DNA of 64,000 nt from Schmidtea polychroa (GCA_044892525.1 CM097886.1:126790001-126854000), one strand, 5' to 3'. Counted from the first letter of the stretch, positions 5,476 through 64,000 are shown. A program made the numbers and translations. Notes: generated from the sequence alone by a model not told the origin.

Positions 5476-5548
<73 letters not shown>

Positions 5549-5915
5549 GTTATTATTAGTGATGATTTCTTGGTAGCAGCATTTATTATTTAAAACAATA
5601 AAATGATAATTTAAGCCTTTTGCTGCAAATAATGTATTTAATGAAAAAATTTTCAACTAAAAGATTAATTAATAATATTATTTTTTATATTATTATTTTT
5701 TTTTATTGTGTTATGATTAGTATAAAGTGATAATTTCTTGGTAGCAGCATTTATTATTTAAAACAATAAAGTGATAATTTAAGCCTTTTGCTGCGAATAA
5801 TGTATTTAATGAAAATATTTTCGACTATAAGATAGTCCTTGTCAATCTATCTTACAGTCGAAAATATTTTCATTAAATACATTATTCGCAGCAAAAGGCT
5901 TAAATTATCACTTTA

Positions 5916-6001
<86 letters not shown>

Positions 6002-32776: not shown

Positions 32777-35700
32777 TCACATTTTGCTTTTTTTGCGGGT
32801 CTCTGCCTCCGATTCTGCTGACGAGTTTTTTGATTTGGTGATTTCGTACCGTTTAAGGACGGTTCTGATTTGTGACAGAAGGAACTGGTCCGTGTCGTCG
32901 ATGGCTTGCTTGCCTGCAATTATAATATGTGTGACAGTGGGCAATTAGATTTCATTGACTGATTCCATTACCACGGGCCATAGCTTACGGCCTACACAAT
33001 ATTTTTGGATTTATCTACCATTGCTAGGCAGCATAAAAATGAAAAGGACAATCGATATAGCATCATTAGTGACGTCGTGTAACAAACAAAAAATTGGAAA
33101 GTATAGAACAAACACTAACCTTCAGTCGTCATAGTGACACCATTGACAACGGCTGTTGAATCATCCATCTCCGCCATAGCCAAGAGGAGGGCACGCTGCA
33201 CATCTGTCAACCGCTTAGGCGGTTGGATCCGAATGTTCAGGTAGTGATCTCCGTACCCAAACGAGTTCATCCTGGCGATCCCTTTGCCAGGCAACCGGAT
33301 CCGATCGTGACTGCAGGAGCCTTTTGGTATCTGGATAACAGTAATAACGTCAGGTGCATCGCGCAAAACAAATAACTCACATCGATGGTTATGTCCCCAT
33401 AAATGCCAGGAACGCTTAGTTTGCCTCCTAATGCAGCCAAAGGCAAAGACACATTGACATCCGAATGCACGTCAGACCCGTCACGACGGAAAGTTTTGCT
33501 CTTCTCCACTCGTACAGTAACCCACAGTTCCTGTACCGCGCGTTCCCCTAGCGAGACACGGAGACTCTGTCCATCCTCGACTCCAGCTGGGATCGATACT
33601 CGAATTGTTTTGCGCTGTGATACCTTGCCGCGGCCCTTGCAATCATGGCAAGCGTTCTTGATGATCCTGCCAGACCCGCCACAACGCGAGCATGTTGAGC
33701 GCATTAGGAAGGGACCAGAATTCACGCTCTGCATCCCGCTACCTTGACATGATGGACAGACAGTACTGGAGGTGCCAGGCTCACTCTTGCTGCCCTTACA
33801 TCTTCCGCATTCTACCATCAGATTCAGATCCAGTTCCTTATTCACCCCGCAGGCAGCCTGATTGAATGTCAAGTTCACCGTCACCTCTTGGGCCCGCTGC
33901 ATACCATCATCGAACCCTGCAATTTATCACTTTCGTCATTAGCAATAAACAAATGGGAAGAGAAGTGGGAAGGGAAATGCCAAAATTTGACTGACTGTAA
34001 AAATCGAAATAACAAGGATCCGATTGGTTGGAGTATTTAAAGCACTAAATAAATGACTCGCGTCCCCTTGAATGCGCTGCCCAATCCCTCGCGACAAAAA
34101 GATCTTGTTAATCTGGAAACCCCATAAAACAATAATCAATTATAAACAGCAGAATTTTACCGAAACTGATTCTGCTATAACGCGCATTTATCAGTCGTTT
34201 TCGAATTTCCTCTAAACTATTTACACTATTGTGCTGCAATTCTATATCCAGTCAAACCCATGAAATTCCAATGGAAATCGCAATAACATACAATTTATTA
34301 CTACATATCTCCTCCTACTGTCATTGTCATAGGATATATTTGAATAAATCTGCTTCTCATCACAATTAGAGCTTCCAATACCGGACAAAAATTTGAATAC
34401 CGGTATTTCGGTATTATATTTTATAGAAACCGGTATAGGTATTCAAAAATGGGACAAATCGAAATACAAAAGAATAAATAAAAAGTTCAAAAACTTTTAT
34501 CGTTTAAAGTAACAAAATGGTTAAAATCGATTATTTAGTATTAAAATATGACCTCAAAAAACATAAATTATTTAAAGTTTCGTCATTTAAAGAAGAAAGA
34601 ATTTTGGTACATAAAATCCCTGAAGAAGAGAAACCCAGTTTAGCTTCCACGCTTGTTGGGGGAATAGTTAAAATATAATCATAAACCAATTTCAGGTTAA
34701 TACCACGCGTGCCGCCTTCCTCAAATATTTCTATTTGTTTTTAGCACACTTTTAATTTTTAATTCATTGTTTATGGCCATATCCAGCTGTTCTTGTAATG
34801 TTAAATTCATAGGTGACCCATTATAATTTTTATGACATCTTCGTCAATAGCTGTTTCAGGTTCAGAAGCTGATGGTTTGGTTTCAGCTGGGGTTGATGAA
34901 AGCCGCTGTATAAGACTCACATTGAAATTTACTAAATCTTTTTTAATTAACCTTTCACATATAATATCAGAACCAAGAATCTTTTGAGCTTGATCTCCTT
35001 TATGAAGATATTGTATTAGATTAGATAAGTTTGAGCGTCTTTCTTTTATTCTTGGAATTAAGGAGGTCTTCATATTGTTACATAATGGGGTTGTGCCCAG
35101 ATTTTGCAGCTAAATGCTAGTATGGTATCAGCCGACTGAAGATATGCATCTCTTCTACATAAAGCCTCTACAGCCAATTTCACGGGCAATAACATATCCA
35201 CTGTTGATGAAATCAATTCTAATTCTGATTCCATAAAAAACAGTTGAATTTAAGTCGATCAGGGCTTTTTGTATGGAATTTTTATTTTATAAAAACGTTC
35301 TAACATGAAAAGTAAGCTGTTCCACCTGGTCTTATTATCCAAAATCAAAGATAACTCCTTTCCATATTCAGTTTTTACATAAACTTGGAGTATCCCATTT
35401 TTTATAGTTGAACGTTTGAAAAGCTTTACAACTTTTCTAACTTTACTTATCGCTGGACCCAAATTATTTGCAAGGTCATTTGAATTTTGCGGGCTTTTAA
35501 AAATTCTTAATCCGTCAAAATCTTCTTTATTGTTTTCATCATCAGATTCAAGATAATCAGCTGTCAAATCCACAAGTGTAGTTTTATATAAAACATCAAC
35601 CACGGCCAGTTGGACTCCATGGGCCAAACAAAGTTGTTGGTCGATGGATATTAATTGTCCTACTTTTTTTTATAATCGAAGCACCATTCGTGGTAATACA

Positions 35701-45504: not shown

Positions 45505-46245
45505 CTACATTCTCACAAAGACAAATTCATTGTAATGTTGCCACTTACTTTCCTCTGAATCTTGTCCAGGCCGATTGTCTGAACCGGCAGAATTTGTGCC
45601 AGATCCACAGGAACCAACCATTTTATATCCACATAAATATAACGAATCAAACGCCTGCTCCAGAACGTTATGTTTGAGAAAGAAACGTGCTGAATATCTG
45701 TCACCTTTAGAACCTGCATATCCACAATCTGGATCCCTGCTCATATTCAACGTATCTTGGAAAACTTCCTTGCAAGGAGAAACCTTTCCACTAACAAGGA
45801 TTCTCGACAATTTCCTAAATTTCACATCGGCTAATCCATCCCTTCCGAACGCAAAAGTGCCCCGATAGCCAAGCGTGATTACATTTGGACCATTATGTTG
45901 GATTCTTTTCTCTAAATTCTCCACCATTTCATTAATTCCGAAGTAAACTGCCTCATTTTTCAATGCCGAAGTTTCTCTAAACGTGTCGGGAAGATTGAAT
46001 TTCGATTCTTTGTTTTTTTTACATCGCAAAAAATCTATTATGAATCGAAAAAGTGTTCCATTTCGATCTATGAAGAGTCTTTTCTTTGAATCGACTAGAG
46101 AATCCGTCGGCTGTTTGAGGTATTGCAGCACAAGACTCGCAAGGTTCGAGTTCGGATATTGGTCAACGAGGGTGGACTTGAACGAAGCGTACGTTACACC
46201 ACCAATATTGAGTTCCACGACTTTGTCATCTGATTTGCTCGACAT
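45505..46245 (-). CDS. Single-exon BTB/POZ (T1-type) protein of the KCTD8/12/16 family with H1 domain
   Basis: 246-aa ORF: VVELNIGG...LFIDRNGTLFRFIIDFLR...EAVYFGI (T1/BTB) followed by ITLGYRGTFAFGR...FRKLSRILV...LSRDP-like MSRDPD...RFFLKHNVLEQAFD...YNEFVFVR (H1 domain). Confidence 0.9.
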   Translation of the reverse strand: MSSKSDDKVVELNIGGVTYASFKSTLVDQYPNSNLASLVLQYLKQPTDSLVDSKKRLFIDRNGTLFRFIIDFLRCKKNKESKFNLPDTFRETSALKNEAVYFGINEMVENLEKRIQHNGPNVITLGYRGTFAFGRDGLADVKFRKLSRILVSGKVSPCKEVFQDTLNMSRDPDCGYAGSKGDRYSARFFLKHNVLEQAFDSLYLCGYKMVGSCGSGTNSAGSDNRPGQDSEESKWQHYNEFVFVRM

Positions 46246-47152
46246 TGTATGGAAAAATATGAGATGAACTCAACTGGCTTGTAACAAGATTTTAATAGGT
46301 GTTTTACCTGCATTCGAGAGAACAGGAATTGTCGAGTGGCATCGTAGACAAATTACAGACATCGAAACACACATTTCAATGGCATACACACCTGTCCACA
46401 TACACACGCACAAGCTCAATGAGTCGTCGCAACTGATGAAAAAATCCCCGTCGATTTTCTGACTGAAGCATGATGGAATCGTTAATGAAACATTAATCGA
46501 TAAATTGTGCGTGTTTACCAACTGAAATCGATATTCCATTTTTATTAATTTTTTTATTAATTTAATTAAATTACGATTAATTTCTCGGTAATTTCTATAA
46601 TCTTCAATTTTCAGAACATTCTTGTCGTCATGGTAACCGATTAGAAAATACGGATTTCTTGCGATTTTCAAAGACAACAAAATTGCTTTTTCGAATGAAT
46701 TTATTTTCCTCGCATTAATTCTTATCCAAATGCTTGTGAAAATAATTGAAAACAAAAAAAAATCCAAAGAAAAAAATTCAACAGGAATGTCAAATTATGT
46801 CTGAAAATCTGAAAATTTATTATCGAAATGCACATGCAGGCGATTTCCAGGTATCGATTGATTTTCAAAGCACACACAATGCTGCCAGCCGCCGGCACAC
46901 CGACACGGTGCCACAGCACACTTGGCAATTGGGATTTGTGCACACATACTCGCACAGTGCCGAATTTCACAATTCAACATTTTATCAGATTTTTCGACAC
47001 TATTTAAAAGTAAAATCCGATCAAATTTTTTATCATTTTTTCTTCAATTTTCACCGTTAAATTATCAAATAAGTAAGTGAAGAATTTCCTGAGATTTTCC
47101 CATATCCAATAACTTAGTTAAAGGCCGACGAATTGATTTGCATTTTTTAGGC
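46246..47152. promoter_or_regulatory. Candidate bidirectional promoter region shared by the KCTD gene and filamin, including a filamin 5'-UTR intron (about 47072-47150)
   Basis: Head-to-head start codons 907 bp apart; GC-rich patch at 46880-46960; GTAAGT donor near 47072 and TTTTTAG acceptor two nt before the filamin ATG. Confidence 0.5.
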
Positions 47153-49074
47153 ATGGCAGATGATGGATATGTCGACGAAATCGAAGAGGTTCTCGATGAC
47201 AGCCGGCCTGAAGAAAGGGACCTAGCTGAAGACGCTCAATGGAAAAAAATCCAAAAGAATACGTTTACAAGGTGGACAAATCAGCATTTGAAGCTAAGTG
47301 GAATGCAGATCAACGATTTGCAATATGATTTGTCGGATGGACTGAAACTGGTAGGTCTAATCCAGGTGTTGTCATCCCAACAGTTCAAGCATGTCAATAA
47401 GCGACCAACTTTCAGAACTCAGAAATTGGAAAACGTTACCATGGTTATGAAGTTCCTTGAAGAGAGCGAACAATTGAGATTGGTTAATATAGGTTAGTAA
47501 TAATAATGAATTCCCCTTTATTCCAAATATGCTCCAATCAATTTCACATTTCAGGGGAATTTATTCCCCCAAATTGTTGATATTAATATATAATTATATT
47601 ATTTGTGTCCACCATCTCATAATTTTTGACGATTTTAGATAGCTCTGATATTGTTGATTGCCGGTTGAAACTTATTTTGGGTCTAATATGGACCTTAATC
47701 TTGCATTATTCGATTTCCATGCCGTTATGGGAAGGAGAGGAACCCATTGCAAAGGTAATATTATTTATTTCGAAGGTGTTTGAATAATTTCTAAAAGGAT
47801 GCCAAGGGTAAGGGACCATCTCCCAAACAAAGAATTCTGTCATGGTTGAATAGCAAAATGCCAGACAAACCAGTAAAAAATCTAACACATGATTGGAATA
47901 ATGGAACGGCAATCGGAGCATTAGTTGATGCTTTGGCTCCAGGCCTTTGTCCTGATTGGAGTGATTGGAATCCAAAAGATGCTTTAAAGAATGCCAAAGA
48001 AGCAATGGATTTAGCCGAAAAATGGCTTGATGTGGCCCAATTGCTGAAACCCGAGGAAATGGTTGATCCAAGAATTGACGAGAAAGCTTTGATGACTTAT
48101 TTGAGCCAGTTTCCAAAAGCTAAATTGAAAGAAGGAGCACCTTTAAGACCAAAAACAAACCCAGCCCGAGTGCGCGCATATGGACCTGGATTGGAGAAAA
48201 CTGGCAATGCCATCAAGGCTCCGGCAAGATTCACTGTTGACGCGTTCAGCGCTGGAACTGGAAAATTAGAAGTCATGGTTTTAAATCCTAAAGGAGCTAC
48301 AGAACCTGTACATTTGATTTGAGAAATCTTTATAAATTAATTTTAAACTTTAGAGCGCCATCGAGTTGAAACCAAACCAAACTCAGATCTATGCTTGTAC
48401 TTACACTCCAACTATGCAAGGAGAATATAGGGTTATCATCAAATATGCCGGGAAAGAAATTCCAAATTCACCTTTTGCAGTAGATGTTGAAGGAATTGCC
48501 GGGGATCCAAGTAAAGTCACGGCTTCAGGACCAGGAATAGAACTCAAAGGCAATGTAATGGGAAAAAGAACATTTTTCAATGTATTCCTAAACAGTATGA
48601 TTAATGAAAGGAATGGATTATTATAATAAATAATGTTAATAGACGCAGGATTTGGGAATATCGAATGCAAGATCAAAGACCCTCAAAATCGCGAAGAAAT
48701 TGTCAAGCCGCTTATAACCAAGCAAACAGAAACTAATTATTTAGTGGAATACACACCAATTTTAGGTGGTCTTCATTCAGTGTCAGTGCTTTTTGCTGGA
48801 CAGCAAATACCTTCGTCCCCCTTTTCAGTTGAAGTCGCTACAGGTCAGCGATACATACTATTTTTCTTGAAAATTTAACAAATTTTATTCAGATTCAGGA
48901 AGAAAGCCTCATCCACTCGAGAGCCATCCAATCATGCAAGGCAATGGGAAACCCGGAGGGATTGTGCCAGAGTCTACCCTACCGTTAAATACGACCCCCA
49001 AGAAAACAGATGATAGTATTACCATTAAACCAAACAAAGGTAAGTTCAGCTATATTTAAGGATAATAATAATAA

Positions 49075-49143
<69 letters not shown>

Positions 49144-52100
49144 TAATAATAATAATAATTTCTTTTGTGATGGTCCGATAATATATTTTTACCAAAGCAA
49201 TATTCCAAAATATCCAAATGATATGATCGAATATTTAGAAATTTGTTTATTTAAATAGCCAAAAATGGCAGCCGGTGAAATGATCAGCACCGATGGGAAT
49301 CAACAGCCGGAAAATTTCTGAATCATTTGAAGTGTGCAGCACGTGTGGGATCCTGGGAATGCTATATAAATAGATTTGTTATGACTGGTTTACTCGCCTA
49401 CCTACACAGTACCAATGGTGGCGGCAACATTTTGACTTAAAANNNNNNNNNNNNNNNNNNNNNNNNNNNNNNNNNNNNNNNNNNNNNNNNNNNNNNNNNN
49501 NNNNNNNNNNNNNNNNNNNNNNNNNNNNNNNNNNNNNNNNNNNNNNNNNNNNNNNNNNNNNNNNNNNNNNNNNNNNNNNNNNNNNNNNNNNNNNNNNNNN
49601 NNNNNNNNNNNNNNNNNNNNNNNNNNNNNNNNNNNNNNNNNNNNNNNNNNNNNNNNNNNNNNNNNNNNNNNNNNNNNNNNNNNNNNNNNNNNNNNNNNNN
49701 NNNNNNNNNNNNNNNNNNNNNNNNNNNNNNNNNNNNNNNNNNNNNNNNNNNNNNNNNNNNNNNNNNNNNNNNNNNNNNNNNNNNNNNNNNNNNNNNNNNN
49801 NNNNNNNNNNNNNNNNNNNNNNNNNNNNNNNNNNNNNNNNNNNNNNNNNNNNTTCCAATTTAGAAGCCGTCTATGTGACTGGACGTGGAATTCAACCAAA
49901 AGGTCTAAGAGTTAATGAACCAACAGAATTTGTTGTTCACACAGAAAATGCAGGTCCAGGCAAAGTACAAGCGAAAGTTGTTGGACCAGGTAAATATTTG
50001 ATTCACATATTTATCCAACAAATATAATTATAATTCAAGGAGGCTTCAATGAATCTGTAAAAATAATTCCAAACAATGATGGTACATATTTATGCGAATA
50101 CAAACCTACGAAAGTTGGCCAATATGTCGTGATCGTTGAGTTTGGCATTGGTCAAGTCCCGAAAAGCCCATTCAAAGTCGATGTATCTGGAGTGTCCAAA
50201 TCAAAAGTAATTGCATATGGGCCAGGATTGAAATCAGGAATTGTTAATACTCCGGCTCCTTTTACGGTGGAATCTCACGGATCTCCAGGAGAATTAGGTG
50301 AGAATGATTCATTTATTTTGGTTTCAAATATAATTTCGATTAGGATTTGCGATTGAGGGACCAAGCGAGGCCAAAATAACTTGTGCTGACAATGGAGATG
50401 GAAGTGCGGCTGTTCAGTATTTACCAGTACTCCCTGGAGAATATGCAGTACATGTTCTATGTAATAAGGAAGATATTAAAGGTTCCCCATTTATGGCAAA
50501 AATAAGTGACTTGCCAACAGTGAAATTCGATGCAACAAAGGTTTAAATAAACATTCAATCGTGACTCCTTTTATCCTTTGGTAAATTTTAGGTGAAAGCA
50601 TTCGGTCCGGGGCTGGAGCCAAAGGGAGTTCAAATTAATAAAGAAACCAATTTTACAATTGATATAAAGAATGCTGGTGCACCGGCGGAAGTCAAGACAT
50701 GGTGCATTGACATCAATGGAAATGAAGTTCCAATAAAGATAACGGACAACCGCAACAGCACATTCACATGCACTTATACAACCAAATTTATTGGAAAACA
50801 TACCATTTACATAAGCTATGGAGGATTCCAAATTCCTTCTAGTCCATATAAAATAGATGTTTCTGGAGAAATCACTACCGGGAATGTAATTGCATCTGGA
50901 TCCGGTCTAGAATCGGCGACTGTTGGGAAACCAGCAACATTTATAATTGACACTAAACCAGTTGGAGGGGACACTGGACCCATAACTGTTGAAATTATGA
51001 CCGAAGATAAAAAGAAAGTTCCTTTCCAATCAAAGGATAAAGATGGAATTCGTGAGATTCAATATACCGCCACTGGGACATTCCAAACCAAATATACAAT
51101 ACAAATATCTTACAAAAACAAACCAATCAACAACAGCCCATATATTGTACCAATTTATACAACTTCTGTTACAGGTTAATTCTCATTCCAATATTGTCGG
51201 CTATTAACCTATTATATAGGAGCTGCGTACGCAACGGGCCGAGGCATTCAACCGAAAGGCATTCGAGTTAATGAAGAAGTCACCTTTTATGTGCACACGG
51301 AAAAAGCTCCTCCAAACGGAACCGTCAAAGCGAAATTAATTGGGCCAGGTAAATTTGTTTATATGAATTTATTTCTATATTACTTTTAGGAGGTGTTCAA
51401 GGAACAATTAATATCACAAAGGAATCTGCTAATGTTTTCAAATGCCAGTACAAACCCACAAAGATTGGAAGTTATGTTATTACAGTAGACTATAACAACA
51501 CTCCAGTAACCGGAGGTCCATTCAAAGTCCAAGTTGATGCAGAAATTCAATCAAAAATTAAAGCCTACGGTCCAGGATTAGAGAAATGTGTCGTCGGAGT
51601 TCCAGCTCCATTCACTGTGGAGACCAACTATGAAAATACTCAATTAGGTTTTGCAAAATGATGGATTTATTCAAGTTTACTTGATTTTGTAGGGTTTGCT
51701 ATAAACGGTCCTGGTGAGGCAAAGGTTGACTGCAAAGATAACGGAGATGGCAGCGTATCTGTGGTCTATCATCCCACAAAACTCGGAGAGCATGCAGTCC
51801 ATATCACAGCCAATGAACAAGATATCCCAAAATCCCCTTACATGGTCATGGCAACGGAAATTATTACACCGAAAGTTGACACCAATAAGGTTACTAGCTA
51901 CCTTTACATTTATTTATTACAAAGCTAAATATTCAGATTAAAGTTTTTGGACCGGGAATTGAGCCGACTGGTAATGTGGCAGGAAAACAAACAAACTTTA
52001 CAGTTGACGCCAAAGCATACAAGGACAAGAAACCAGTTGAGGTAAACTGTTTCGACAGTGATGGCATAGCCATCCCAGTTCAGGTGGTGGAAAATCCAGA

Positions 52101-55100
52101 TTTCACCTACTCGTGCATATACACTCCATTGACACCTAAGAAACATACAATTTACGTTTCCTATGCCGGGTATGAAGTACCCAACAGCCCTTACAAAGTA
52201 AATTTGTAATCAAGCAATTTTAATTAGATTAATCATAAAACCAGGTAAACATTGCACCAGGTCAAATTGGCAGTGTAAAAACAAGCGGCCCAGGTTTAGA
52301 GAAGGCCACGGCTCAACAGCCCACATATTTTATTATTGATACAACAGAAGTTGGATCACAAACAAGCGCACTTTTCATTGACATAAAGATGAGTAAGGGT
52401 CAACAGGTACCATTCAATTCAAAAATTACAAAGCCAGGAATCTGTGAAATTTCCTACACTCCTGTTAGCAAAGTTGATGACACCCTCACCATAACTGTAA
52501 ATTATCAGTCAGAACCAGTTAAAGGAAGTCCATTTAAAGTTAAAGTTTCTAGCACTGGAACAGGTAGCAGTGGTGATAACATTTGAATATTGAAATTGAT
52601 GAAAAACCTTAGACACATCAAGCGGAAGGGTTTATGTTACTGGAAAAGGAGTCCTGCCAAAAGGAGTCAAAACCAATGAACCAGTATCCTTTAAAGTCCA
52701 CACTGAAAAGCCGACGTCTAATGATAATCTAAAAACAAAAATTGTTGGACCAAGTACAAAATTTAAAACTTTATTCATTTAGACTTGCTTACTTAATTAG
52801 ACGGGATCCCGGTAACAGTACAAACGAAAAAGCTAACACCAGAAGTATACGAATGCCAATATAGCAGTCCATTGGAGGGAATGCATATTGTCTCCGTAGA
52901 TTTCAATGGCAAACCTGTGGATAAGAGTCCATTTAACGTATAGATAAAAATTAAAATCTCATTATTATTTCCCATATATATATATATAGGTAACACTTAG
53001 TCCTCAAAAGCCATCAAATATCAAAGCATACGGTCCAGGATTAGAAGGAGGAGTGGTGAATGTCCCTGCGGTTTTCACTGTCAATCCGAATGGCGAAACA
53101 TCAAAACTTGGTGAATGCAACATATACCAATAAGCTTTATATTAATAATACTTAGATTTCCAAATTGAAGGGCCAAAGGAAGCCAAGATCACTTGTAAGG
53201 ACAATGGAGATGGGACAATTGGAGTACAATATCTTCCAGTTGAAAAGGGAGAATACATAGTCCATGTTTTGTCTAATAACGAAGAGATTCCTAAGTCTCC
53301 ATTTGTCGTTGACATAGAGAATGCACCTGAAAGCAGCGTCCACCCAGAAAAGGTTCAAATTGTAAACTGCATTGTGTATTGTAACAAATCTAATTCTAAA
53401 GGTAAAAGCATACGGACCTGGTTTGCAAACCCCTGGGGTTGTTATAAGCAAACCAACTCAGTTTACTGTTGACGCCACTCAAGCAGGACCATTAAAACCT
53501 GTGATGGTTAAGTGCTACGATAAGGACGGTAACTTAATTCCAATTCAAACGTCACCAGTGTCGAATCAAGTAACAACAAACACATACAACCCAACAAATC
53601 CAGGCAAACATATGATAAGTGTCGCATATGGAGGAGTGCAAATTTCTAACAGCCCATTTACGGTAATTTACACACTGAGTGATTTTGTAAATGAAAGAAT
53701 CTATCAGGTTAATGTCGGACAACAAACAACCACCGATGTTGTAGCGTACGGTCCAGGTCTGACAGCGGCAGAACAAAACATTCCCACGAGTTTTACTGTA
53801 GATGCGACTGGAATCAACGGCAATACGAGCCGGATCCAACATTCTATTGTTGATGAGAAAAACCAAAAACTGCCAACAAAAGCGACAGAAATTGCTCCAG
53901 GAAAGCAAGAAATTTCGTATACTCCTAATAAGCCAGGAGTCAAAACCTTTACTGTGAATGTTACCTACGACAACAAACCAATCAAAGGAAGTCCATTCAA
54001 AGTCCCAGTGCAACCGAAAAAAGATAAAGATGGTATAATCACATTTTGAAACAGAAAATCTATTATAATTCACTCTAGTAACCGTAACTGGACGAGGAAT
54101 CCAACCAGTCGGTCTGAGAGTTGATGAAAAAGTCAGTTTTAATGTAGAAAGTAACGAACCAGTTGCCGTAAATGATTTCAAACCAAAGATCGTCGGACCA
54201 GGGGGAGTTCAAGACAAACCAACCGTCACCCAAGTCTCACCCAATAAGTTACAATGCACATACGTTCCATCGAAAGTAGGAAATTATTCCATTATCACAG
54301 ACCTAGAAGGGAAACCAATTGATAAATCACCATTCAAGGTAAATGAAATAGACAATAAATAAAAATTAATTAATATAAAGGTTGACATTGCTCCAAAATC
54401 AAAATCCTTAGTGAGAGCATTCGGATCGGGTCTAGAAGGAGGTCAAGTAAAATCCCCAGCAATATTCTTCGTTGAAACAAATGGAGAAACTGGGAAAATT
54501 GGTACAATAATTAAGACTATGGAAAGATAACATAATTATGCATTTCTTTAAGGATTCGAAGTCAAAGGTCCGAGTGAAGCAAAATTGTCATGCACAGATC
54601 TTGGAAATGGAAAGATTCAAGTCGAATATCTACCAGAATTGCCTGGAGAATACAGCGTTAGAGTTCTTTGCAATGATAATGATATCCAGAACTCTCCATT
54701 CATGGTACCCATCACTCCAGCTTTGTTAGACAAATGCGATCTAACCAAAGTTTGAGATCAGTTATAATAAATATGGCTTAATATTAATTTCCAGGCCAAA
54801 GTATTTGGACCAGGAATCGAATCGAAACCTTTACCAGTTGACAAAGAGACCACGTTTACAGTGGATACTCTAGATTGTGGACCAGTATCACCAGCAGTTG
54901 CTAAATGTTACGACAAACAAGGAAATGTGGTCCCTGTAAAATCAACGAAACAACCAAACGGATTAGAAACATTTGCGTATACTCCAAAAAGAAATGAGGA
55001 TCATGTTGTTCAAGTCTTGGTCGATAATAAAGAAATTCCGAAGAGTCCATTCAAAGTGATACATACGAATGTATTGTAAGTTCATAACGCATTTATTGTC

Positions 55101-58100
55101 AGGTCAATATTGGCCCAACTACTGACAAAGAAGTAACCGCTTACGGACCAGGTCTAACCAGTGCTGAACCGAATACCCCAACAAGTTTTGTGGTCGACGC
55201 AACCGCTATCAATGGTACTACAAATAAGATAAAGCACTCGATTGTTGATGATAAAAACCGAACTGTCCCAACAAAGACATCAGACATTGCTCCTGGTAAA
55301 CAAGAGATTTCATATACACCTTCGAATGCCGGAATTGCAAACGTCACTGTGAATGTATCATATGATGACAAACCAATCAAAGGAAGTCCATTCAAAACCC
55401 CAGTTCAGCCGAAGAAAGACAAAAATGGTAACTTGATAATGAAACTTCACTATTATTAATCCTTGGATGTAGTGACTGTAAGTGGTCGTGGGGTTCAGCC
55501 GATCGGATTGAGGGTCGATGAGATTGTGAATTTCACAGTTGAGTCAGATGTACCTATTGATGCTAAAGATTTGAAACCAAAGATTATCGGACCCGGGGGA
55601 GTTCAAGACAAACCAACCGTCACCCAAGTCTCACCCAATAAGTTACAATGCACATACGTTCCATCGAAAGTAGGAAATTATTCCATTATCACAGACCTAG
55701 AAGGGAAACCAATTGATAAATCACCATTCAAGGTAAATGAAATAGACAATAAAAAAAAATTAATTAATATAAAGGTTGACATTGCTCCAAAATCAAAATC
55801 CTTAGTGAAAGCATTCGGATCGGGTCTAGAAGGAGGTCAAACAAAATCCCCAGCAATATTCTTCGTTGAAACAAATGGAGAAACTGGGAAAATTGGTAAA
55901 TTATTTCCTATTTTATAATAATTTCCTACTATATCATTTATTTTTGTAATCCTTGAATCTTCATTTTCTTTCCTAATATTCCACGATCCTGTGAGACAAT
56001 CTGTGCTTTCAGGGCGATAGGGGTAATGGTTGAGGAGGCTGAATCGTAAGAGATTTTCTTTCTTCTATAAAATACATAGAGATAGTTTGTTTCTTCTTAA
56101 AGGCACGAAAACCTCTCAATAGTTGCATGCGTTGAATATCTCTTTGACTGGGTCTGTAGTAGCTTTAGACCTACTAAAGGCTCGTAAACGAAAACTCAAA
56201 ATGATGGAATTAGCAATTAAAACTGGAAGGTGTTAATTTCGAACTCCTTTCTAACCTTAGAGAAATTTGGAGAAATTTCATCAAACCTCCAAGAATAACA
56301 ACGATAATAGTGCAAGCTTCTACAATAAATTTTGCATTTCTATCACAATACCAGAGCAGATTCAAATATCAAGAGTGATTCCGGTCTACAAAGAGATCCA
56401 GGTCGTCTTTTCTCAAATTGAATTGGCCATTGAATAAATATGGGTTCATTTATTCATTCTTTATCATTCGAATGCTTTCTTTATCACTCCCAATGAATAT
56501 TATTCTTGGTGGAATTTCCTTTAGGAATGGTTACTCTGGCAAATATAACTTTTGGGGCGAATTTGGTTCCATTACCCGTAACACCTAATACCACTGTCGA
56601 ACCCCACTTTCCAATCTAGATTTGCCAGAGTAACCATTCCTAAAGGGAAATTCCACCAAGAATAATATTCATTGGGAGTAATAAAGAAAGCATTCGNNNN
56701 NNNNNNNNNNNNNNNNNNNNNNNNNNNNNNNNNNNNNNNNNNNNNNNNNNNNNNNNNNNNNNNNNNNNNNNNNNNNNNNNNNNNNNNNNNNNNNNNNNNN
56801 NNNNNNNNNNNNNNNNNNNNNNNNNNNNNNNNNNNNNNNNNNNNNNNNNNNNNNNNNNNNNNNNNNNNNNNNNNNNNNNNNNNNNNNNNNNNNNNNNNNN
56901 NNNNNNNNNNNNNNNNNNNNNNNNNNNNNNNNNNNNNNNNNNNNNNNNNNNNNNNNNNNNNNNNNNTCATTAAAAATATCTGTTAAGTCGAAAAAAAGAA
57001 TTTGGATGAAAAAAATGTTGTGAACCTTTTTAGTTTCAATTAGCGAAGGGATAATGGGAGATATTCTCTATTTATATGTAAAATATTCTCTACGGAATTT
57101 CCTAGGTGGCATCATGCACTGAAAATGCCACAATAATTCCCATGTGCTGAACACATCACTCCATCTAGGCAAGTGCGACTAAGTGGTTCGGTGTAATTGG
57201 ATATTAGTATTTCCCGTGTTACATATTCACTGAATTTGCATCCCAGAATTGGTATCGGTGAACATTCATATTAACCGGGCTGCTCGGTACATTTCCCATT
57301 CTAGACATCTGATCTATTACCTATCCCTTTCACATTTAGCATTTTCACCCGTTAGATTTCTTATTATGGATTTACATTGGGTTTGCAAACAAAATGTCTC
57401 AGTACATAAAAGTTCGTGTTGGAGTCCCTAGGGAGAGGAGGGCCAGTAAGGCGACAAATAATTCTACATTTTATATTTTATAATAATTTTCAAAAGCTAA
57501 TAAATAATGAACATTTGTTGGCAAAAAAACTATAACTGTGTGACTTAACTATGAAGGCAAATGGCCGCTCATTCCAATTCGATGGCGCGGAGGGAATCAT
57601 TTGGTTCACAAACATGACACAAAAGAAAGAATGTAGTCACATATCCATAAGATACAGAAACAGAAATTTTGCCAATTGAATGAATTCTAGATTGGCTGTT
57701 TGTCCAATACCTACCAATCCCTCATCTCGCTGCCCCTCATTACAGTACCCCACGACATCTAGGTTTACCAACGTAATTTAGGATGCAAATAATGTAACTT
57801 GACAGCAACAAATGAGCGGTGCGCAAGGAAATTAAATCCAAAAGAGGGACAAATAGTCAGAAAAATTACCATATGCCCACCAGAAGGTGGAAGTATTTCA
57901 CAAACGATATTGATAAAGATTTCTTTGCTGCCCTTCAGCAATATTTGATTCAGATTTCCCGAACATTTCATTCAGATTTCTTTGAAATCTTTTGACTAAA
58001 ATCTATTAAAATATATATACTAGAACATAGGCGATTAAATCAGTTAAATATCAAGTGGAATTGATAGAATTTGCTTTCTTCAATACTAGGACACTTTCTG

Positions 58101-61100
58101 GACTACGATCGGTAAATGCTTAAGAAACATTCAAATCCTTGAAATGGAAGGAATTCACTTTTAAACAACATTTAGTTAACTGTCGTAGGGGGGCGGAAAC
58201 TATATTTTTTATCATTGAAGGATAAATACACCTTATAACCAGAGATTCAATGAAGTGTTTTAATTAGTAAAATACTTAAGGATTCGAAGTCAAGGGTCCG
58301 AGTGAAGCTAAATTGTCATGCACAGATCTTGGAAATGGAAAGATTCAAGTCGAATATCTACCAGAATTGCCTGGAGAATACAGCGTTAGAGTTCTTTGCA
58401 ATGATAATGATATCCAGAACTCTCCATTCATGGTACCCATCACTCCAGCTTTGTTAGACAAATGCGACCTAACCAAGGTTTGAGATCAGTTAGAATAAAT
58501 ATGGCTTAATATTAATTTCCAGGCCAAAGTATTTGGACCAGGAATCGAATCGAAACCTTTACCAGTTGACAAAGAGACCACGTTTACAGTGGATACTCGA
58601 GATTGTGGACCAGTAACACCAGCAGTTGGTAAATGTTACGACAAACAAGGAAATGTGGTCCCTGTAAAATCAACGAAACAACCAAACGGATTAGAAACAT
58701 TTGCGTATACTCCAAAAAGAAATGAGGATCATGTTGTTCAAGTCTTGGTCGATAATAAAGAAATTCCGAAGAGTCCATTCAAAGTGAGACATATGAATAT
58801 ATTGTCAGTTCATAACACATTTCTTGTCAGGTCAATGTTGGCCAAACTACTGACAAAGAAGTAACCGCTTACGGACCAGGTCTAACCAGTGCTGAACCGA
58901 ATACCCCAACAAGTTTTGTGGTCGACGCAACCGCTATCAATGGTACTACAAATAAGATAAAGCACTTGATTGTTGATGATAAAAACCGAACTGTCCCAAC
59001 AAAGACATCAGACATTGCTCCTGGTAAACAAGAGATTTCATATACACCTTCGAATGCCGGAGTTGCAAACGTCACTGTGAATGTATCATATGATGACAAA
59101 CCAATCAAAGGAAGTCCATTCAAAACCCCAGTTCAGCCGAAGAAAGACAAAAATGGTAACTTGATAATGAAACTTCACTATTATTAATCCTTGGATGTAG
59201 TGACTGTAAGTGGTCGTGGGGTTCAGCCGATCGGATTGAGGGTCGATGAGATTGTGAATTTCACAGTTGAGTCAGATGTACCTATTGATGCTAAAGATTT
59301 GAAACCAAAGATTATCGGACCCGGGGGTGTTCAAGACAAACCAACCGTCACACAAGTATCACCCAATAAGTTACAATGCACATACGTTCCATCGAAAGTA
59401 GGAAATTATTCCATTATCACAGACCTAGAAGGGAAACCAATTGATAAATCACCATTCAAGGTAAATGAAATAGACAATAAATAAAGATTAATTAATTTGA
59501 AGGTTGACATTGCTCCAAAATCAAAATCCTTAGTGAGAGCATTCGGATCGGGTCTAGAAGGAGGTCAAGTAAAATCCCCAGCAATATTCTTCGTTGAAAC
59601 AAATGGAGAAACTGGGAAAATTGGTACAATAATTAAGACTATGGAAAGATAACATAATTATGCATTTCTTTAAGGATTCGAAGTCAAAGGTCCGAGCGAA
59701 GCAAAATTGTCATGCACAGATCTTGGAAATGGAAAGATTCAAGTCGAATATCTACCAGAATTGCCTGGAGAATACAGCGTTAGAGTTCTTTGCAATGATA
59801 GTGATATCCAGAACTCTCCATTCATGGTACCCATCACTCCAGCTTTGTTAGACAAATGCGATCTGACCAAAGTTTGAGATCAGTTAGAATAAATATGGCT
59901 TAATATTAATTTCCAGGCCAAAGTATTTGGACCAGGAATCGAATCGAAACCTTTACCAGTTGACAAAGAGACCACGTTTACAGTGGATACTCGAGATTGT
60001 GGACCAGTAACACCAGCAGTTGCTAAATGTTACGACAAACAAGGAAATGTGATCCCTGTAAAATCAACGAAACAACCAAACGAATTAGAAACATTTGCGT
60101 ATACTCCAAAAAGAAATGAGGATCATGTTGTTCAAGTCTTGGTCGATAATAAAGAAATTCCGAAGAGTCCATTCAAAGTGAGATATATGAATGTATTGTC
60201 AGTTCATAACACATTTATCGTCAGGTCAATGTTGGCCCAACTACTGACAAAGAAGTCACCGCTTACGGACCTGGTCTAACCAGTGCTGAACCGAATACCC
60301 CAACAAGTTTTGTGGTCGACGCAACCGCTATCAATGGTACTACAAATAAGATAAAACACTCGATTGTTGATGATAAAAACCGAACTGTCCCAACAAAGAC
60401 ATCAGACATTGCTCCTGGTAAACAAGAGATTTTATATACACCTTCGAATGCCGGAGTTGCAAACGTCACTGTGAATGTATCATATGATGACAAACCAATC
60501 AAAGGAAGTCCATTCAAAACCCCAGTTCAGCCGAAGAAAGACAAAAATGGTAACTTGATAATGAAACTTCACTATTATTAATCCTTGGATGTAGTGACTG
60601 TAAGTGGTCGTGGGGTTCAGCCGATTGGATTGAGGGTCGATGAGATTGTGAATTTCACAGTTGAGTCAGATGTACCTATCGATGCTAAAGATTTAAAAGC
60701 AAAGGTTGTTGGACCAGAGGGTATTCAAGACAAACCAACCGTCACACAAGTATCACCCAATAAGTTACAATGCACATACGTTCCATCGAAAGTAGGAAAT
60801 TATTCCATTATCACAGACCTAGAAGGGAAACCAATTGATAAATCACCATTCAAGGTAGATTGAAACATTTTAAACTTCACCATTATTATGTACATAGGTT
60901 GATGTGGCACAGAAATCAAAGTCACCAGTAAAAGCATTCGGATCGGGTCTAGAAAGGGGTCAAGAAAAGTCTCCTACAATTTTCTTTGTAGAAACAAATG
61001 GAGAAACTGGGAAAATTGGTACAATAATTAAGACTATGGAAAGATAACATAATTATGCATTTCTTTAAGGATTCGAAGTCAAAGGTCCGAGTGAAGCAAA

Positions 61101-64000
61101 ATTGTCATGCACAGATCTTGGAAATGGAAAGATTCAAGTCGAATATCTACCAGAATTGTCTGGAGAATACAGCGTTAGAGTTCTTTGCAATGATAGTGAT
61201 ATCCAGAACTCTCCATTCATGGTACCCATCACTCCAGCGTTGTTAGACAAATGCGATCTAACCAAAGTTTGAGATCAGTTATAATAAATATGGCTTAATA
61301 TTAATTTCCAGGCCAAAGTATTTGGACCAGGAATCGAATCGAAACCTTTACCAGTTGACAAAGAGACCACGTTTACAGTGGATACTCGAGATTGTGAATC
61401 AGTCACACCAGCAGTTGCTAAATGTTATGATAAACAAGGAACACAACTTCCTCTAAAATCTGAAACGCAACCAAACGGTGTTCAACAGTTTGCATATAAA
61501 CCCAAGTCTGATGGTGAACATATTGTCCAAGTATTGATTGATAACAAAGAAATTCCTAATAGTCCTTTCAAAGTATCCCTTCATAATGTATTTTTTTATT
61601 CATTTCATTTTTCAGTTAAATGTTGAAAATGTGAAGCCCGTTGAAGCTAAAAAGCTATCCGATGGAATTATGGTATATGGACCTGGCCTTAAAGATGCTG
61701 ATATTAATTCTGATTCTCCAAACCATTTTTATGTCGACTGTCGACTCTGCGATAGCCCATCTTCCTCCATTCCGAAGGTTGAACTCTTTGATGATAACAA
61801 CAAAGTAGTTCCATCAGAAATTAAACCTACAAAAACTCCAGACCTTTATGAAGTTACTTATAAACCTCTAGAAAATCCCAATAACAAAGCATTGCATCCT
61901 AAAGTGACAGTGGGAGGCGAAGATATCCCAGGAAGTCCATTCACTATTCCATTAACTAAAAAGGATGAGGATTCCAATTATTGTGGAACATTAGAAGATT
62001 TGAAACCAAGTAAATAAAATGTCTGCTTTGTAAGATAATATATTTTGATAGATGTAAAACTACAATTGCCTCAGACGTTTAAGGTCAAGTTGAATGAAGG
62101 AACCAAATCAACACCATGTGTAACAATTTCGGATAAAAATGGAGTTGCAGTTGAGCCAGTACTTGTTGAAAAAGTGAGCCCGAACACATATCAAGCTACG
62201 TACACTCCAATCCAACCTGGCCAGCATATAATTTTGGCCTCGGCCGATGGGAAACCTGTTGCTAAAACTCCCGTTGTCGTGTCAGTTGTGGAGGAAATAC
62301 CTGAAAATGTTGAGAAGATCAAAGTAGAAGGTCTTGCACCGAGTAAGATCTTTTATATTATTTTTCAGATTAGCAAAATTTATTTTAGTGATTGAAGTTA
62401 ACGCTCCTCAAACCTTTAAAATTTTGTCGCCAGAAAAGACAATTAATCCTGATCTAGTTGATGTTCAAGTTTTAAATCCAACCAATAAAATCATTCCGAT
62501 TCTCAAAGAAGCTGTGCGAGATGGAACAAAAGTTACATATGTTCCAGAAGAAAATGGACCACATACTATTGGATGCTGGGTTCAAGACCAACCTATCAAT
62601 GAAACTCCCTGTATTGTGAAATCTCTTCCAAAAGCCAATATTCATGAAGCCATAAACAAAAAACCAAGTCCAGCCACATTAGCCGTTGAAGAACAAGGTA
62701 AATTTGCTTTCATTTTTGATTTGAATACTACTTTATATTTAGGAAGCCAAGTAGGCAAGCCTTGTTCCTTTACAATTGTGAAGGACAATATTAATGATGA
62801 CATACATAACGTCGATGTTGTCGTTTTGTCACCTGACGACCATCAGCCTATCCCTGTCAAAAAAACAAAATTGCCCAAAGGACTTTTATGTGAATTTGTA
62901 CCAAAGAAAGCCGGTCCATATTCATTGGCAGCTTCTGTTGATAATACTCCCATTAAAGGCTCACCCGAAACAATAGTTATCCTAGAAAGTTCATTAATAA
63001 AAGAAGAACCAATCTTGCAAGAGCAAATTAAAACCTTGAAAGCTGGAAATCCACATAATCCAACACAGAAAGCCAATCCTGGAAAGAACAATAAACCTTA
63101 TACCGCATTAGAAGAAGCCATCAAGGAAATGAAAGTTAGTGAATAAAGTAAATAACATTAGTAAATATTATTGTAGGAAGCCGCTGTCGAAACCAGCAAG
63201 TGGCCACAAAGCAAACCTGATCAACCATCTTCAAAGGTTTTAGTTTATGGAGAAGGACTAGAAAAGGTTGCTGCTAAAGAAAAGGCAACCTTTACCATTG
63301 ATTCTAAAGATGCCCCGTCAGCTCCAATTGGAGTAACAGTTGAAGGTCCTGGTGAGGCAATTATTGATTGCGTGGACAATGGTGATGGAACATGTGGTGT
63401 TGCATATGAAGTACCAGTACCAGGATTGTACACAATTAATGTCCTCTACGATAATGTACACATTCCTCAAAGCCCAATTATTGTGCCAGTTTATCCTAAG
63501 GACAATAAAAATTTAGATTTGTCTACAATAACTACCTCTGGTCCTGGACTCAGCCCTGAAGGTTAGGAAATTAATACGATAATGCATCTTCAAATAACTT
63601 CTAGGAGTATTTAAAGATTGTTTCGCTAAATTTACCGTAGACGCTTCTGAGGTCAGTCCAAACGGACAGGGAACTGTTAAAGCGCTGGTTCAAAGCCCAT
63701 CTGGTAAACAAACTAGTGGTCTAATAGACAATCTTAAAAATGGGAATTATGTAGTTCGATACACGCCTACAGAAGAAGGTAATACTTCATTATTAATTAT
63801 AAACCGTCACCCTATATGTAGGCCCACATAAAATTAATGTGATGTATGAAGGACTTCCTATTCAAGGGAGTCCTTTTGTTGTGAAAGCTAAACCTGGATT
63901 TAATGCTCAACTAGTGACAGCAAGTGGACCCGGACTTCATTCATGTAAAGTTAATGAGAAAACTCAGTTTATTGTCGATCTTGATGGAGCAGGTCACGGA
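47153..64000 (+). CDS. FLN: Filamin (actin-binding CH1-CH2 plus Ig-like repeats), 3'-partial, with expanded repeat rod
   Basis: ATG at 47153; [15 protein letters not shown]...[18 protein letters not shown] (CH1), PKQRILSW...[12 protein letters not shown] (CH2), then about 36 Ig repeats of the type V.AYGPGL...SPF.V, all joined by frame-consistent 40-60 nt introns except two long ones; no in-frame stops seen in the exons. Confidence 0.95.
49062..49159. repeat. Compound (TAA)n(TAC)n(TAA)n microsatellite in filamin intron
   Basis: Direct reading of sequence. Confidence 0.95.
56318..56392 (+). mobile_element. Non-LTR (LINE, CR1/L2/Jockey-like) reverse transcriptase fragment in filamin intron
   Basis: [25 protein letters not shown] resembles the LINE RT domain-0 motif FN.SL..G.FP..LK.AKVIP.YK. 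Confidence 0.5.
56469..56696. repeat. Long inverted repeat abutting an assembly gap
   Basis: Arms 56469-56544 and 56620-56696 (76/77 bp, 1 mismatch, 1 indel), 75-nt spacer. Confidence 0.9.

Follow-up and report, generated by a model that had tools for sequence, protein, structure and literature searches.

A 64,000-nucleotide stretch of Schmidtea polychroa DNA (GCA_044892525.1 CM097886.1:126790001-126854000; hereafter the window) ends inside a filamin gene in which a group of four Ig domains recurs many times over. How did this array arise, and do all of its copies enter a single protein? A sequence-only reading had recognized seven four-domain cassettes (domains a, b, c and d) and had proposed either a giant filamin or an array used combinatorially by splicing.

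Gene identity and domain architecture

All features described below lie on the plus strand. Matches to PF00307 (CH; 47138-47497, E 2.5e-12, and 47846-48322, E 2.9e-14) and to PF00630 mark a filamin architecture, with a two-CH N-terminal actin-binding domain and a rod of tandem Ig repeats in the same transcript. The actin-binding domain, comprising two calponin-homology domains on several exons, was placed at 47156..48160 by PF00307 and by an exon model that missed the second CH1 exon near 47623-47784. It is followed by Ig1 and Ig2 (48170..48897; 77 and 60 bits with the repeat HMM), whose best matches are the Ig1 and Ig2 of reference filamins; Ig1 also groups with oyster Ig1 in the domain tree. 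A neighboring KCTD gene has its closest matches at 86-96%, with beetle and the annelid Dimorphilus at 56-57%.

The cassettes had been described as directly following Ig1 and Ig2. This order is correct, but a non-Ig linker exon of 49 aa (48893..49039) intervenes between Ig2 and cassette 1, and the RNA contig letters before 49862 equal positions 49008-49037. In one RNA contig (X2) the 49008-49039 exon is joined to cassette 1 with 1578 nt upstream of the joint, which would be the predicted N-terminal coding sequence as judged from its length only. When aligned to the first halves of the seven a domains, the 49-aa exon behaved like shuffled sequence (z -0.9 to 0.2), and a relic half a-domain was rejected. 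The intron that follows (49040..49863) contains an assembly gap (49443-49852) and an (AAT)n/(ACT)n microsatellite. RNA contigs of both studies, X1 and X2, splice 49039 directly to 49864, which rules out further exons or a cassette within this gap for the dominant transcript.

From 49866 to the end of the window, 40 exons joined across GT..AG introns form a single stop-free spliced frame of 3334 aa. Apart from one enlarged intron in cassette 5, the introns are short (40-52 nt). A repeat HMM built from the window recovered 33 full Ig domains in this frame at 61-101 bits each, which together with the Pfam matches confirms the filamin repeats by the PF00630 check that had been suggested. Of these 33 domains, 28 make up the seven cassettes, in the order a, b, c, d each time. 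The cassette starts read earlier (49864, 51220, 52613, 54079, 55473, 59201 and 60595) all proved to be acceptor-flanked exon starts in one continuous frame, and the quoted motifs of domains a, b and c (for example, AYGPGL.GG, LPGEY.V.VLCN and FTVD) are present in the sequence.

Cassette 1 (49864..51174) has a 1164-nt CDS with domains a, b, c and d at 49869-50197, 50207-50513, 50592-50873 and 50886-51167, and its three introns were all seen as GT..AG joints in RNA contigs. Joints of cassette 2 (51220..52563; CDS 1164 nt) were likewise found in RNA, from which the exon end at 52563 was set, and every exon of cassette 3 (52613..54032; CDS 1182 nt) is covered by RNA contig coordinates. Cassette 4 (54079..55427) is the young unit U4, and a single-copy RNA contig reaches 159 nt inside it. 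Young hybrid units form cassettes 5 (55473..59155) and 6 (59201..60549), the latter 98% identical to cassette 5 in amino acids. Cassette 7 (60595..62009) departs from the young repeat at 61441, so that the second half of c and the whole of d are old and diverged; a loose end in the DNA runs X8 and X16 is identical to the window from 61442.

Beyond the array lie three degenerate Ig repeats without the usual first strand (62052..62993; 61-65 HMM bits, matching from model positions 6-12) and a hinge-like non-Ig linker of about 67 aa (62994..63236; no Ig match in residues 3043-3111). The last stretch (63237..63994) encodes an Ig9-like repeat of class-A type, an Ig11-like repeat and the start of another Ig, as assigned by best matches, tree and HMM. 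The earlier count of 33 Ig repeats ahead of the Ig9-like repeat at 63237 was thus reproduced as Ig1, Ig2, 28 cassette domains and three degenerate domains. Altogether about 3860 aa are encoded within the window. The gene continues past the window edge at 64000, and its C-terminal half, including the dimerization repeat, lies outside; a total of 45-50 repeats is an extrapolation beyond the window.

Orthology of the cassette domains

Class-A ligand-binding repeats of filamins comprise Ig4, 9, 12, 17, 19, 21 and 23. To this class the b domains belong both by sequence group and by their C-D strand motif, which is retained in all copies. When the domains were placed in a tree together with those of fish, crinoid, amphioxus and oyster filamins, all seven b domains fell in the Ig4/9/12 clade (SH-aLRT support 99), and b exon 2 matches structures and peptide complexes of Ig17, Ig19 and Ig21 at 40-78 bits. 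Domain b is also the best conserved of the four, with 44-64% identity to Ig4 orthologs.

The proposed correspondence of a, b and c to filamin domains 3, 4 and 5 held firmly for the first two, a grouping with Ig3 (support 99) and b with Ig4 (98). For c, the Ig5 assignment is carried by a clade in the best tree and by a structural match, while its tree support is weak; c and d are short domains, and their placement in the tree is weak for that reason. A clade of d with Ig6 was not rejected (p-AU 0.67), and the sequence of d is compatible with an Ig6 origin. The a domains are monophyletic (98), whereas the b, c and d labels need one change each on the tree. Each of a, b and c has 4m9p as its top solved structure, matching the first, second and third domain, respectively (chain residues 11-92, 136-193 and 201-289). 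This structure represents the Ig3-5 module (PMC4170960), a compact unit in which Ig4 is stabilized by its neighbors (PMC4170960). A further PDB entry for this module is 3V8O. Best matches, tree and 4m9p thus agree on three consecutive Ig3, Ig4 and Ig5 orthologs per cassette, with the c-Ig5 clade being the weak element.

Intron positions, age and selection

Shared intron positions had been put forward as a mark of descent from one cassette. Three positions, b-internal, b/c and d/a, are indeed common to all seven cassettes in place and phase, and b exon 2 measures 197 nt in every copy. The remaining three are not universal: the a-internal intron occurs in cassettes 1-3 only, the a/b-linker intron in 3-7 only and the c/d intron in 2-7 only, with cassette 3 alone having the a-internal and a/b-linker introns together. 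Common descent fits the three universal positions and the single clade formed by all a domains (98), and the combination of position-wise domain groups with a shared exon structure corresponds to duplication of a genomic segment of the Trichoplax type.

The cassettes are of two ages. Pairs among the five old cassettes share 35-49% amino acid identity; dN/dS is 0.16-0.30 in those with measurable synonymous change, and synonymous sites are saturated in the other old pairs. Cassettes 4-7, on the other hand, are not independent old copies: they make up a mosaic array of recent origin that repeats every 1394 bp. Within it the young units share 94-98% amino acid identity. Cassettes 5 and 6 are recent mosaics assembled from parts of cassettes 4 and 7, and they differ from each other at 1.9% of exon sites (dS 0.046, dN/dS 0.25). 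The first 140 nt of cassette 4 have just 64-74% identity to units 5-7. By these substitution patterns, all cassettes are under purifying selection.

Such figures bear on the idea that the array is a decaying, non-functional duplication whose pseudo-exons yield no working protein. Tandem repeats are generally unstable, and in cassette 5 the in-frame stop of the a/b intron is gone. Against this, 3334 codons run without a stop or a frameshift, the measurable dN/dS values are low as given above, and spliced transcript contigs come from two independent RNA studies, so that we regard decay as exceedingly improbable.

Transcription and splicing

RNA evidence was drawn from assembled contigs of two studies, X1 (2016) and X2 (2017); in such contigs rare isoforms drop out, and depth is a rough mean and not a copy number. 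Transcript contigs of 6743 nt (X1) and 5248 nt (X2) run through cassettes 1-3 into cassette 4 with every intron removed. Contigs joining the end of d to a downstream-type a are deeper than the single-copy contig by factors of 3.65 (X1) and 3.14 (X2). A transcript with the whole of cassettes 4-7 should have three d-to-a junctions, and a junction depth of 3.1-3.7x fits inclusion of all cassettes and not a choice of one in seven. No single molecule was seen to span cassettes 4-7, and their order and number in the mRNA therefore rest on these depth ratios.

Alternatively, the cassettes could be mutually exclusive or combinatorial variants, the usual protein being a filamin of ordinary length with one chosen Ig3-6 variant. 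Skipping of whole cassettes would keep the frame, since all cassettes have phase-1 intron borders and lengths that are multiples of 3 nt, and minor isoforms could go unseen in contigs. Nevertheless, no cassette-skipping joint occurs among the 15 joints listed of 25, and the dominant contigs of both studies are serial, from cassette 1 through 2 and 3 to 4. Downstream-type a has more than 3 times the depth of cassette-4 a, and not a lower depth, and conserved elements resembling docking sites are not evident in the 40-52-nt introns. Mutually exclusive choice of the Dscam type has one member per transcript, whereas the dominant contigs of the two RNA studies carry cassettes 1 to 3 in series and then the beginning of 4. 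We therefore consider alternative cassettes very unlikely. Of the two interpretations raised at the outset, spliced contigs through cassettes 1-4 and the junction depth ratios favor the giant protein; combinatorial splicing found no support in the contigs, which rare isoforms could escape.

Assembly gaps and the number of young units

Even with the old cassettes real, the number of young 1394-bp units may be a product of assembly: units 5 and 6 could be two alleles of one unit placed in tandem, or further units could have been collapsed into or hidden by the gap in unit 5, giving six cassettes, or eight and more. Units 5 and 6 differ little (the 1.9% given above), and one of five gaps in the scaffold lies inside unit 5. 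There the b-internal intron (55896..58280) is enlarged to 2385 nt, compared with 45-51 nt elsewhere, by unique sequence with a gap at 56697-56966, beside which a hairpin (56469-56696) ends exactly at the gap edge. This gap could hide further units. Furthermore, junction sequences by the a/b intron and b exon 2 in X16, from another study, are missing from the window, and some RNA contigs in the young units reach depths of up to 5-6x single copy.

Other observations speak for the assembled number. The d-to-a' junction depth of 3.1-3.7x in two RNA studies fits three junctions, and thus four units, better than two. For the c/d intron, X8 yields three separate variant contigs at depths of 24-29 against 80.6 for the shared d segment, which also fits three to four units; both lines of depth evidence are rough. 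Copy number was taken from X8 and X16 only as contig ratios inside the young units, and these were given little weight, most contigs at cassettes 1-3 having depth 0 in the two runs, a possible effect of filtering. Finally, the insertion sets unit 5 apart as a distinct locus, with both of its ends present in X8; X8 may be the source sample of the window itself, and its evidence would then not be independent. Both the 49443-49852 and the 56697-56966 gaps are intronic, and the exons flanking the latter stay in frame. On balance, a wrong unit number appears unlikely, though it is a stronger candidate than alternative splicing.

Contigs of X8 contain both outer exon junctions of the 2.3-kb block within the enlarged intron, one on each side of the gap. 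No terminal inverted repeats, long ORF or second copy of the block were detected within the window, and a recognizable transposon was rejected on these grounds.

Proposed origin and function

We consider it highly probable that the locus is a functional, transcribed filamin gene whose rod 1 grew longer through repeated tandem duplication of a four-Ig segment. The duplicated genomic segment would encode an Ig3-type repeat, an Ig4-type repeat of the class-A ligand-binding type, an Ig5-type repeat and a fourth, Ig6-compatible repeat. An order of duplication is suggested by the domain tree and the nested gains and losses of introns: cassette 1 would have separated before cassette 2, then cassette 3, and then the ancestor of 4-7, giving the five old cassettes. 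The chimeric units 5 and 6 would be later additions, formed when cassettes 4 and 7 recently underwent unequal crossing-over or gene conversion, which would also have homogenized parts of these two cassettes. With the cassettes carried one after another in the mRNA, the subunit encoded in the window would reach about 3860 aa.

The gene is predicted to encode an actin cross-linker whose N-terminal rod is much extended and in which each subunit has seven putative Ig4-type peptide-binding sites instead of one in that segment. Each of these sites may be packed in a compact Ig3-5-like module. More tentatively, and at rather less than even likelihood, the array may still be evolving by unequal crossing-over, with rod length varying between individuals or strains and the seven Ig4-type sites acting as a serial multivalent ruler for receptor clustering or force sensing. 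If so, the gene would provide a natural dosage series of the N-terminal filamin module, about whose role little is known so far.

Much less is known about what the filamin Ig3-5 module does than about the function of the C-terminal mechanosensor pairs. Seven copies under purifying selection, five of them ancient, argue for the module as a selectable functional unit, of which the Ig4-type repeat is the best-conserved part, and the seven sequence variants make up a comparative set for studies of structure and binding. In the young mosaic units, unequal exchange can clearly be seen to be ongoing within a coding array, and the duplications can be dated without recourse to sequence divergence from the nested gains and losses of introns. 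The locus is also a warning to annotators: its product is a single protein of 3860 aa or more, which short-read assembly and gene callers are likely to break.

Comparison with known filamins

Vertebrate filamins A, B and C have 24 Ig repeats. Like them, the gene described here encodes a CH-CH domain and PF00630 repeats, with an unchanged succession of Ig1, Ig2 and then Ig3-, Ig4- and Ig5-type repeats, an Ig4-type repeat in the ligand-binding 4/9/12 clade, and Ig9- and Ig11-like repeats further on. However, the Ig3-Ig6-type block occurs seven times and not once, Ig2 is followed by a non-Ig exon of 49 aa, and the Ig9-like repeat comes only after three degenerate repeats and a linker of 67 aa. 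At about 3860 aa, the part encoded in the window is already longer than a complete vertebrate filamin (2627-2711 aa for the fish FLNC used in the comparison).

Lineage-specific expansions of filamins in Trichoplax and Hirudo were reportedly described by Light et al. in 2012. The filamin of Trichoplax adhaerens has 36 domains and that of Hirudo medicinalis 35, both as lineage-specific expansions (PMC8275333 and its supplement). The mode of growth, a cascade of multi-domain tandem duplications, is the same in Trichoplax as here. Compared with both, the S. polychroa gene reaches about 36 repeats by the window edge, with probably more beyond, and has in addition a still-active young layer of units at 94-98% amino acid identity.

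Giant filamin-like predictions also occur in public assemblies, with 75 (P0003), 71 (P0015), 58 (P0011) and 50 (P0006) Ig domains, and P0012 has 13, of which 12 are Ig3-like. These are unannotated predictions known here from their sequence alone. They share with our gene very long PF00630 arrays that are clearly periodic, with units of 3 to 9 domains. In contrast, their units are built of other repeat types, such as 2-18-12-13-17 in P0003, and have at most 23-32% identity to the present gene. In a protein profile search of the full library, identity over the aligned stretches did not exceed 35%, BLAST against those matches gave 43% over a 389-aa alignment at best, and a word-index search with c1 and d1 gave no match; the closest fragments were P0089 and P0095. 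The S. polychroa gene is an unusually long example of a type of filamin expansion known from earlier reports on other invertebrates.

Gene structure and layout of the cassette array

The window has a G+C content of 35% and contains five assembly gaps. Besides the filamin gene, it carries a dynein heavy chain gene on the plus strand (446-14988, with exons of up to 841 codons), a DnaJ-type zinc-finger exon on the minus strand (33267-33902) and a minus-strand, single-exon KCTD8/12/16-like gene (45505-46245), which has relatives at 86-96% identity and finds its best named matches in a beetle and an annelid (56-57%). The filamin gene begins near 47150 on the plus strand with two calponin-homology domains (PF00307), followed by filamin repeats (PF00630). 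Training a small dynamic-programming gene model on the clear exons yielded one stop-free path, running from 49866 to 63994. After manual correction of two in-frame introns and RNA-based correction of two splice sites, the final version comprises 40 exons and 3334 codons, with introns of 40-52 nt, all GT..AG, plus one of 2385 nt.

Searched with a repeat HMM that was iteratively built on domains of the window itself, the final model contains 33 complete Ig repeats and the beginning of a 34th. The first 28 of them form seven runs of four types, a, b, c and d. The corresponding plus-strand cassettes start at 49864, 51220, 52613, 54079, 55473, 59201 and 60595, and their coding lengths are 1164, 1164, 1182, 1164, 1164, 1164 and 1233 nt, respectively. 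All seven starts are identical to those listed in an earlier, sequence-only reading of this DNA, which had also placed about 33 repeats ahead of the Ig9-like repeat; that count is correct and comprises Ig1, Ig2, the 28 cassette repeats and three degenerate ones. Ig1 and Ig2 lie upstream of cassette 1 on the same strand. Between Ig2 and the first Ig3-type repeat there is an expressed non-Ig exon of 49 aa (48893-49039, plus strand), rich in proline and lysine and without similarity to the first half of domain a. Cassette 7 is followed on the plus strand by three degenerate Ig repeats, devoid of the usual first strand, and then by a non-Ig linker of ~67 aa; this segment (62052-63236) may represent an unusually placed hinge. 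The plus strand continues with an Ig9-like repeat (63237) and one resembling Ig11, after which the gene exits the window.

Identity of the cassette repeats

Filamins of killifish (FLNC, 24 domains), crinoid, amphioxus and oyster were cut into domains with the same HMM; the oyster numbering is off by one, its Ig2 having been split into two matches. The best match of every a domain is Ig3 in all four references, while that of every b domain is Ig4 in the crinoid and oyster; the fish and amphioxus references give a few b domains a slightly better score for Ig9. The c domains of cassettes 1-3 mostly match Ig5 best, and the d domains gave weak matches only (20-38 bits). In a maximum likelihood tree of 118 domains, the seven a domains and seven Ig3 orthologues make up a starred clade (99), as do the seven b domains and seven Ig4 orthologues (98), nested in a starred clade of Ig4, Ig9 and Ig12 (99). 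Monophyly of the a domains has a support of 98, and they branch as a ladder in the order 1, 2, 3, then 4-7. Domains c and Ig5 form a clade with weak support in the best tree, and constraining d with Ig6 gave a likelihood above that of the quick free search and was not rejected (p-AU 0.67).

When a, the second exon of b and c were compared with solved structures, the three-domain filamin structure 4M9P came out on top each time, matched at chain residues 11-92, 136-193 and 201-289, respectively, and thus in its domains one, two and three. According to PMC4170960, 4M9P and 3V8O are structures of filamin domains 3-5, which make up a compact three-domain module where domain 4 is stabilised by its neighbours. 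Domain b is the best conserved, with 44-64% identity to Ig4 orthologues versus 31-48% for a, 27-51% for c and 26-44% for d, and the alignment shows that the C-D strand motif of the ligand-binding class is kept in all b copies. Taking these best matches, tree groupings, structure matches and conservation features together, the proposed equivalence of a, b and c to filamin domains 3, 4 and 5 holds, the c-Ig5 link being weakly supported in the tree.

History of the array

All seven cassettes have introns at three common positions and in the same phase, namely inside b, at the b/c boundary and between d and the next a, and the second exon of b measures 197 nt in each. These shared introns and the constant exon length show that genomic segments, and not cDNA, were duplicated. 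Descent from one cassette fits these three sites; the other introns are only partly shared, in a nested pattern. The intron inside a occurs only in cassettes 1-3, that in the a/b linker only in cassettes 3-7 and the c/d intron only in cassettes 2-7, so that cassette 3 carries both the a-internal and the a/b-linker introns. This nesting agrees with the ladder of a domains and provides an independent order of events. The segment 49864-62009 neatly illustrates how introns come and go within a single gene.

Pairs of old cassettes share 35-49% amino-acid identity, with saturated synonymous sites and dN/dS of 0.16-0.30. Cassettes 4-7 constitute a young array with a 1394-bp period and patchwork identity. 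Over its first 140 nt, unit 4 is only 64-74% identical to units 5-7; these three share 86-100% identity with one another in that stretch. Unit 7 is diverged at positions equivalent to 54358-54497 of unit 4 and departs permanently from the repeat at 61441, a point at which the DNA runs also show a loose end. In units 5 and 6, a 5' end of the unit-7 type is joined to a remainder of the unit-4 type. In the simplest reading, two moderately old cassettes, 4 and 7, would have given rise by unequal crossing-over to the chimeric units 5 and 6, with conversion tracts between units 4 and 7, other orders of events being possible. The youngest pair, units 5 and 6, shows 98% amino-acid identity, a dS of 0.046 and a dN/dS of 0.25, the latter based on small counts (12 synonymous and 10 non-synonymous changes).

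Transcription and splicing

Contigs from two RNA runs of different studies, X1 (2016) and X2 (2017), and from two DNA-like runs, X8 and X16, were mapped to 49853-55472. A 6743-nt contig of X1 and a 5248-nt contig of X2 span cassettes 1, 2 and 3 with every predicted intron removed, and after the two splice-site corrections the contig record coordinates account for every exon. Both extend another 159 nt, into cassette 4, before the repeat interrupts the assembly. The X2 contig has 1578 nt ahead of cassette 1, the same length as predicted for the coding sequence from the actin-binding domain through Ig1 and Ig2 to the linker exon; judging from this length only, the transcript very probably begins at the filamin N-terminus. 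The X1 contig has 3073 nt before cassette 1, extending ~1.5 kb beyond both the predicted N-terminal coding length and the X2 contig; the surplus might reflect a long 5' UTR, additional exons upstream or a neighbouring transcript merged into the contig.

Within the young array, a 470-nt contig runs from the end of d (55427) back into an a domain of the type found in units 5-7, at 3.65 (X1) and 3.14 (X2) times the depth of the single-copy contig; an mRNA that included all of units 4-7 would be expected to have three such d-to-a junctions. The suggestion that the array is used combinatorially by splicing is disfavoured by the serial cassette 1-3 contigs running into cassette 4, and no cassette-skipping joint was found among the joints listed. 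Since contigs lose rare variants, constitutive inclusion is well supported as the dominant form, with minor isoforms possible. Contig depth is likewise no copy number, so the count of young units is uncertain by about one either way; depths of variant contigs in the X8 and X16 runs would fit three to five units. RNA loose ends at 50340 (b exon 2 of cassette 1 only) and 52547 (end of d2 only) lead to sequence absent from the window, and these contigs probably derive from paralogous filamin genes.

Assembly gaps and the enlarged intron of cassette 5

Two gaps bear on the array. The gap at 49443-49852 touches its start and is intronic in the dominant transcript, as the X1 and X2 contig letters just upstream of 49862 are identical to 49008-49037. 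The same intron holds a long (AAT)n/(ACT)n microsatellite (49057-49166).

The gap at 56697-56966 lies inside the 2385-nt plus-strand intron 55896-58280, which splits domain b of cassette 5 in the same codon phase as the 45-51-nt intron of the other six cassettes; the flanking exons, 55775-55895 and 58281-58477, encode the two halves of b and join in frame. The extra 2.3 kb occurs only in cassette 5. No other copy of this block was found in the window, and it has no terminal inverted repeats and no long ORF. A 228-nt hairpin (56469-56696; arms of 54 and 33 nt, 94-96% complementary) stops exactly at the left gap edge, 56697, and may be either a genuine foldback or an artefact of assembly from which the gap arose. 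The flanks of the gap may be contiguous, or it may conceal further units. Contigs of X8 contain the outer junction at either end of the block; this run is possibly the assembly's own sample and thus not independent support. At the equivalent junctions X16, from another study, has different sequences that are not in the window, which hints at structural polymorphism between samples. In the a/b-linker intron of the same cassette (55733-55774) an in-frame stop is lost, with AAA here versus TAA in cassettes 4 and 6, and its retention would add 14 residues with the frame intact.

Protein size and comparison with known filamins

The filamin is intact, under selection and transcribed. Its window-encoded part amounts to ~3860 aa: the 3334-aa part corresponds to 358 kDa, and the N-terminal part adds ~530 aa. 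If the remainder resembles ordinary filamins after Ig11 (~13 more repeats), extrapolation would give a total near 48 repeats and above 5000 aa, within the roughly 45-50 repeats put forward earlier. In a working model drawn from established filamin biology, the protein would use its N-terminal domain and a presumed dimerising C-terminal repeat beyond the window to cross-link actin, and the seven-fold Ig3-6 block would lengthen rod 1. This rod segment would contain seven copies of the predicted Ig4-type peptide-binding repeat, each possibly within a compact Ig3-5-like module. The seven-fold multiplication described in the sequence-only reading is thus confirmed and its interpretation supported, with the exception of the total size and the splicing alternative.

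Protein library searches found no close relative, the best match being a 469-aa fragment at 43% identity. Expanded filamins have been described in Trichoplax adhaerens (36 domains, with a clear cascade of tandem multi-domain duplications) and Hirudo medicinalis (35 domains) (PMC8275333 and its supplement, re-analysing Light et al. 2012), and a full-library search returned unannotated filamin-like predictions with 50-75 repeats built of other multi-domain units. From these published expansions and predictions, this kind of filamin is already known, and the gene in the window is a new, long example of lineage-specific filamin expansion. Its own particulars are the duplicated unit, composed of the Ig3-5 module and one further repeat, and the combination of five ancient conserved copies with a young layer that is still being reshuffled.
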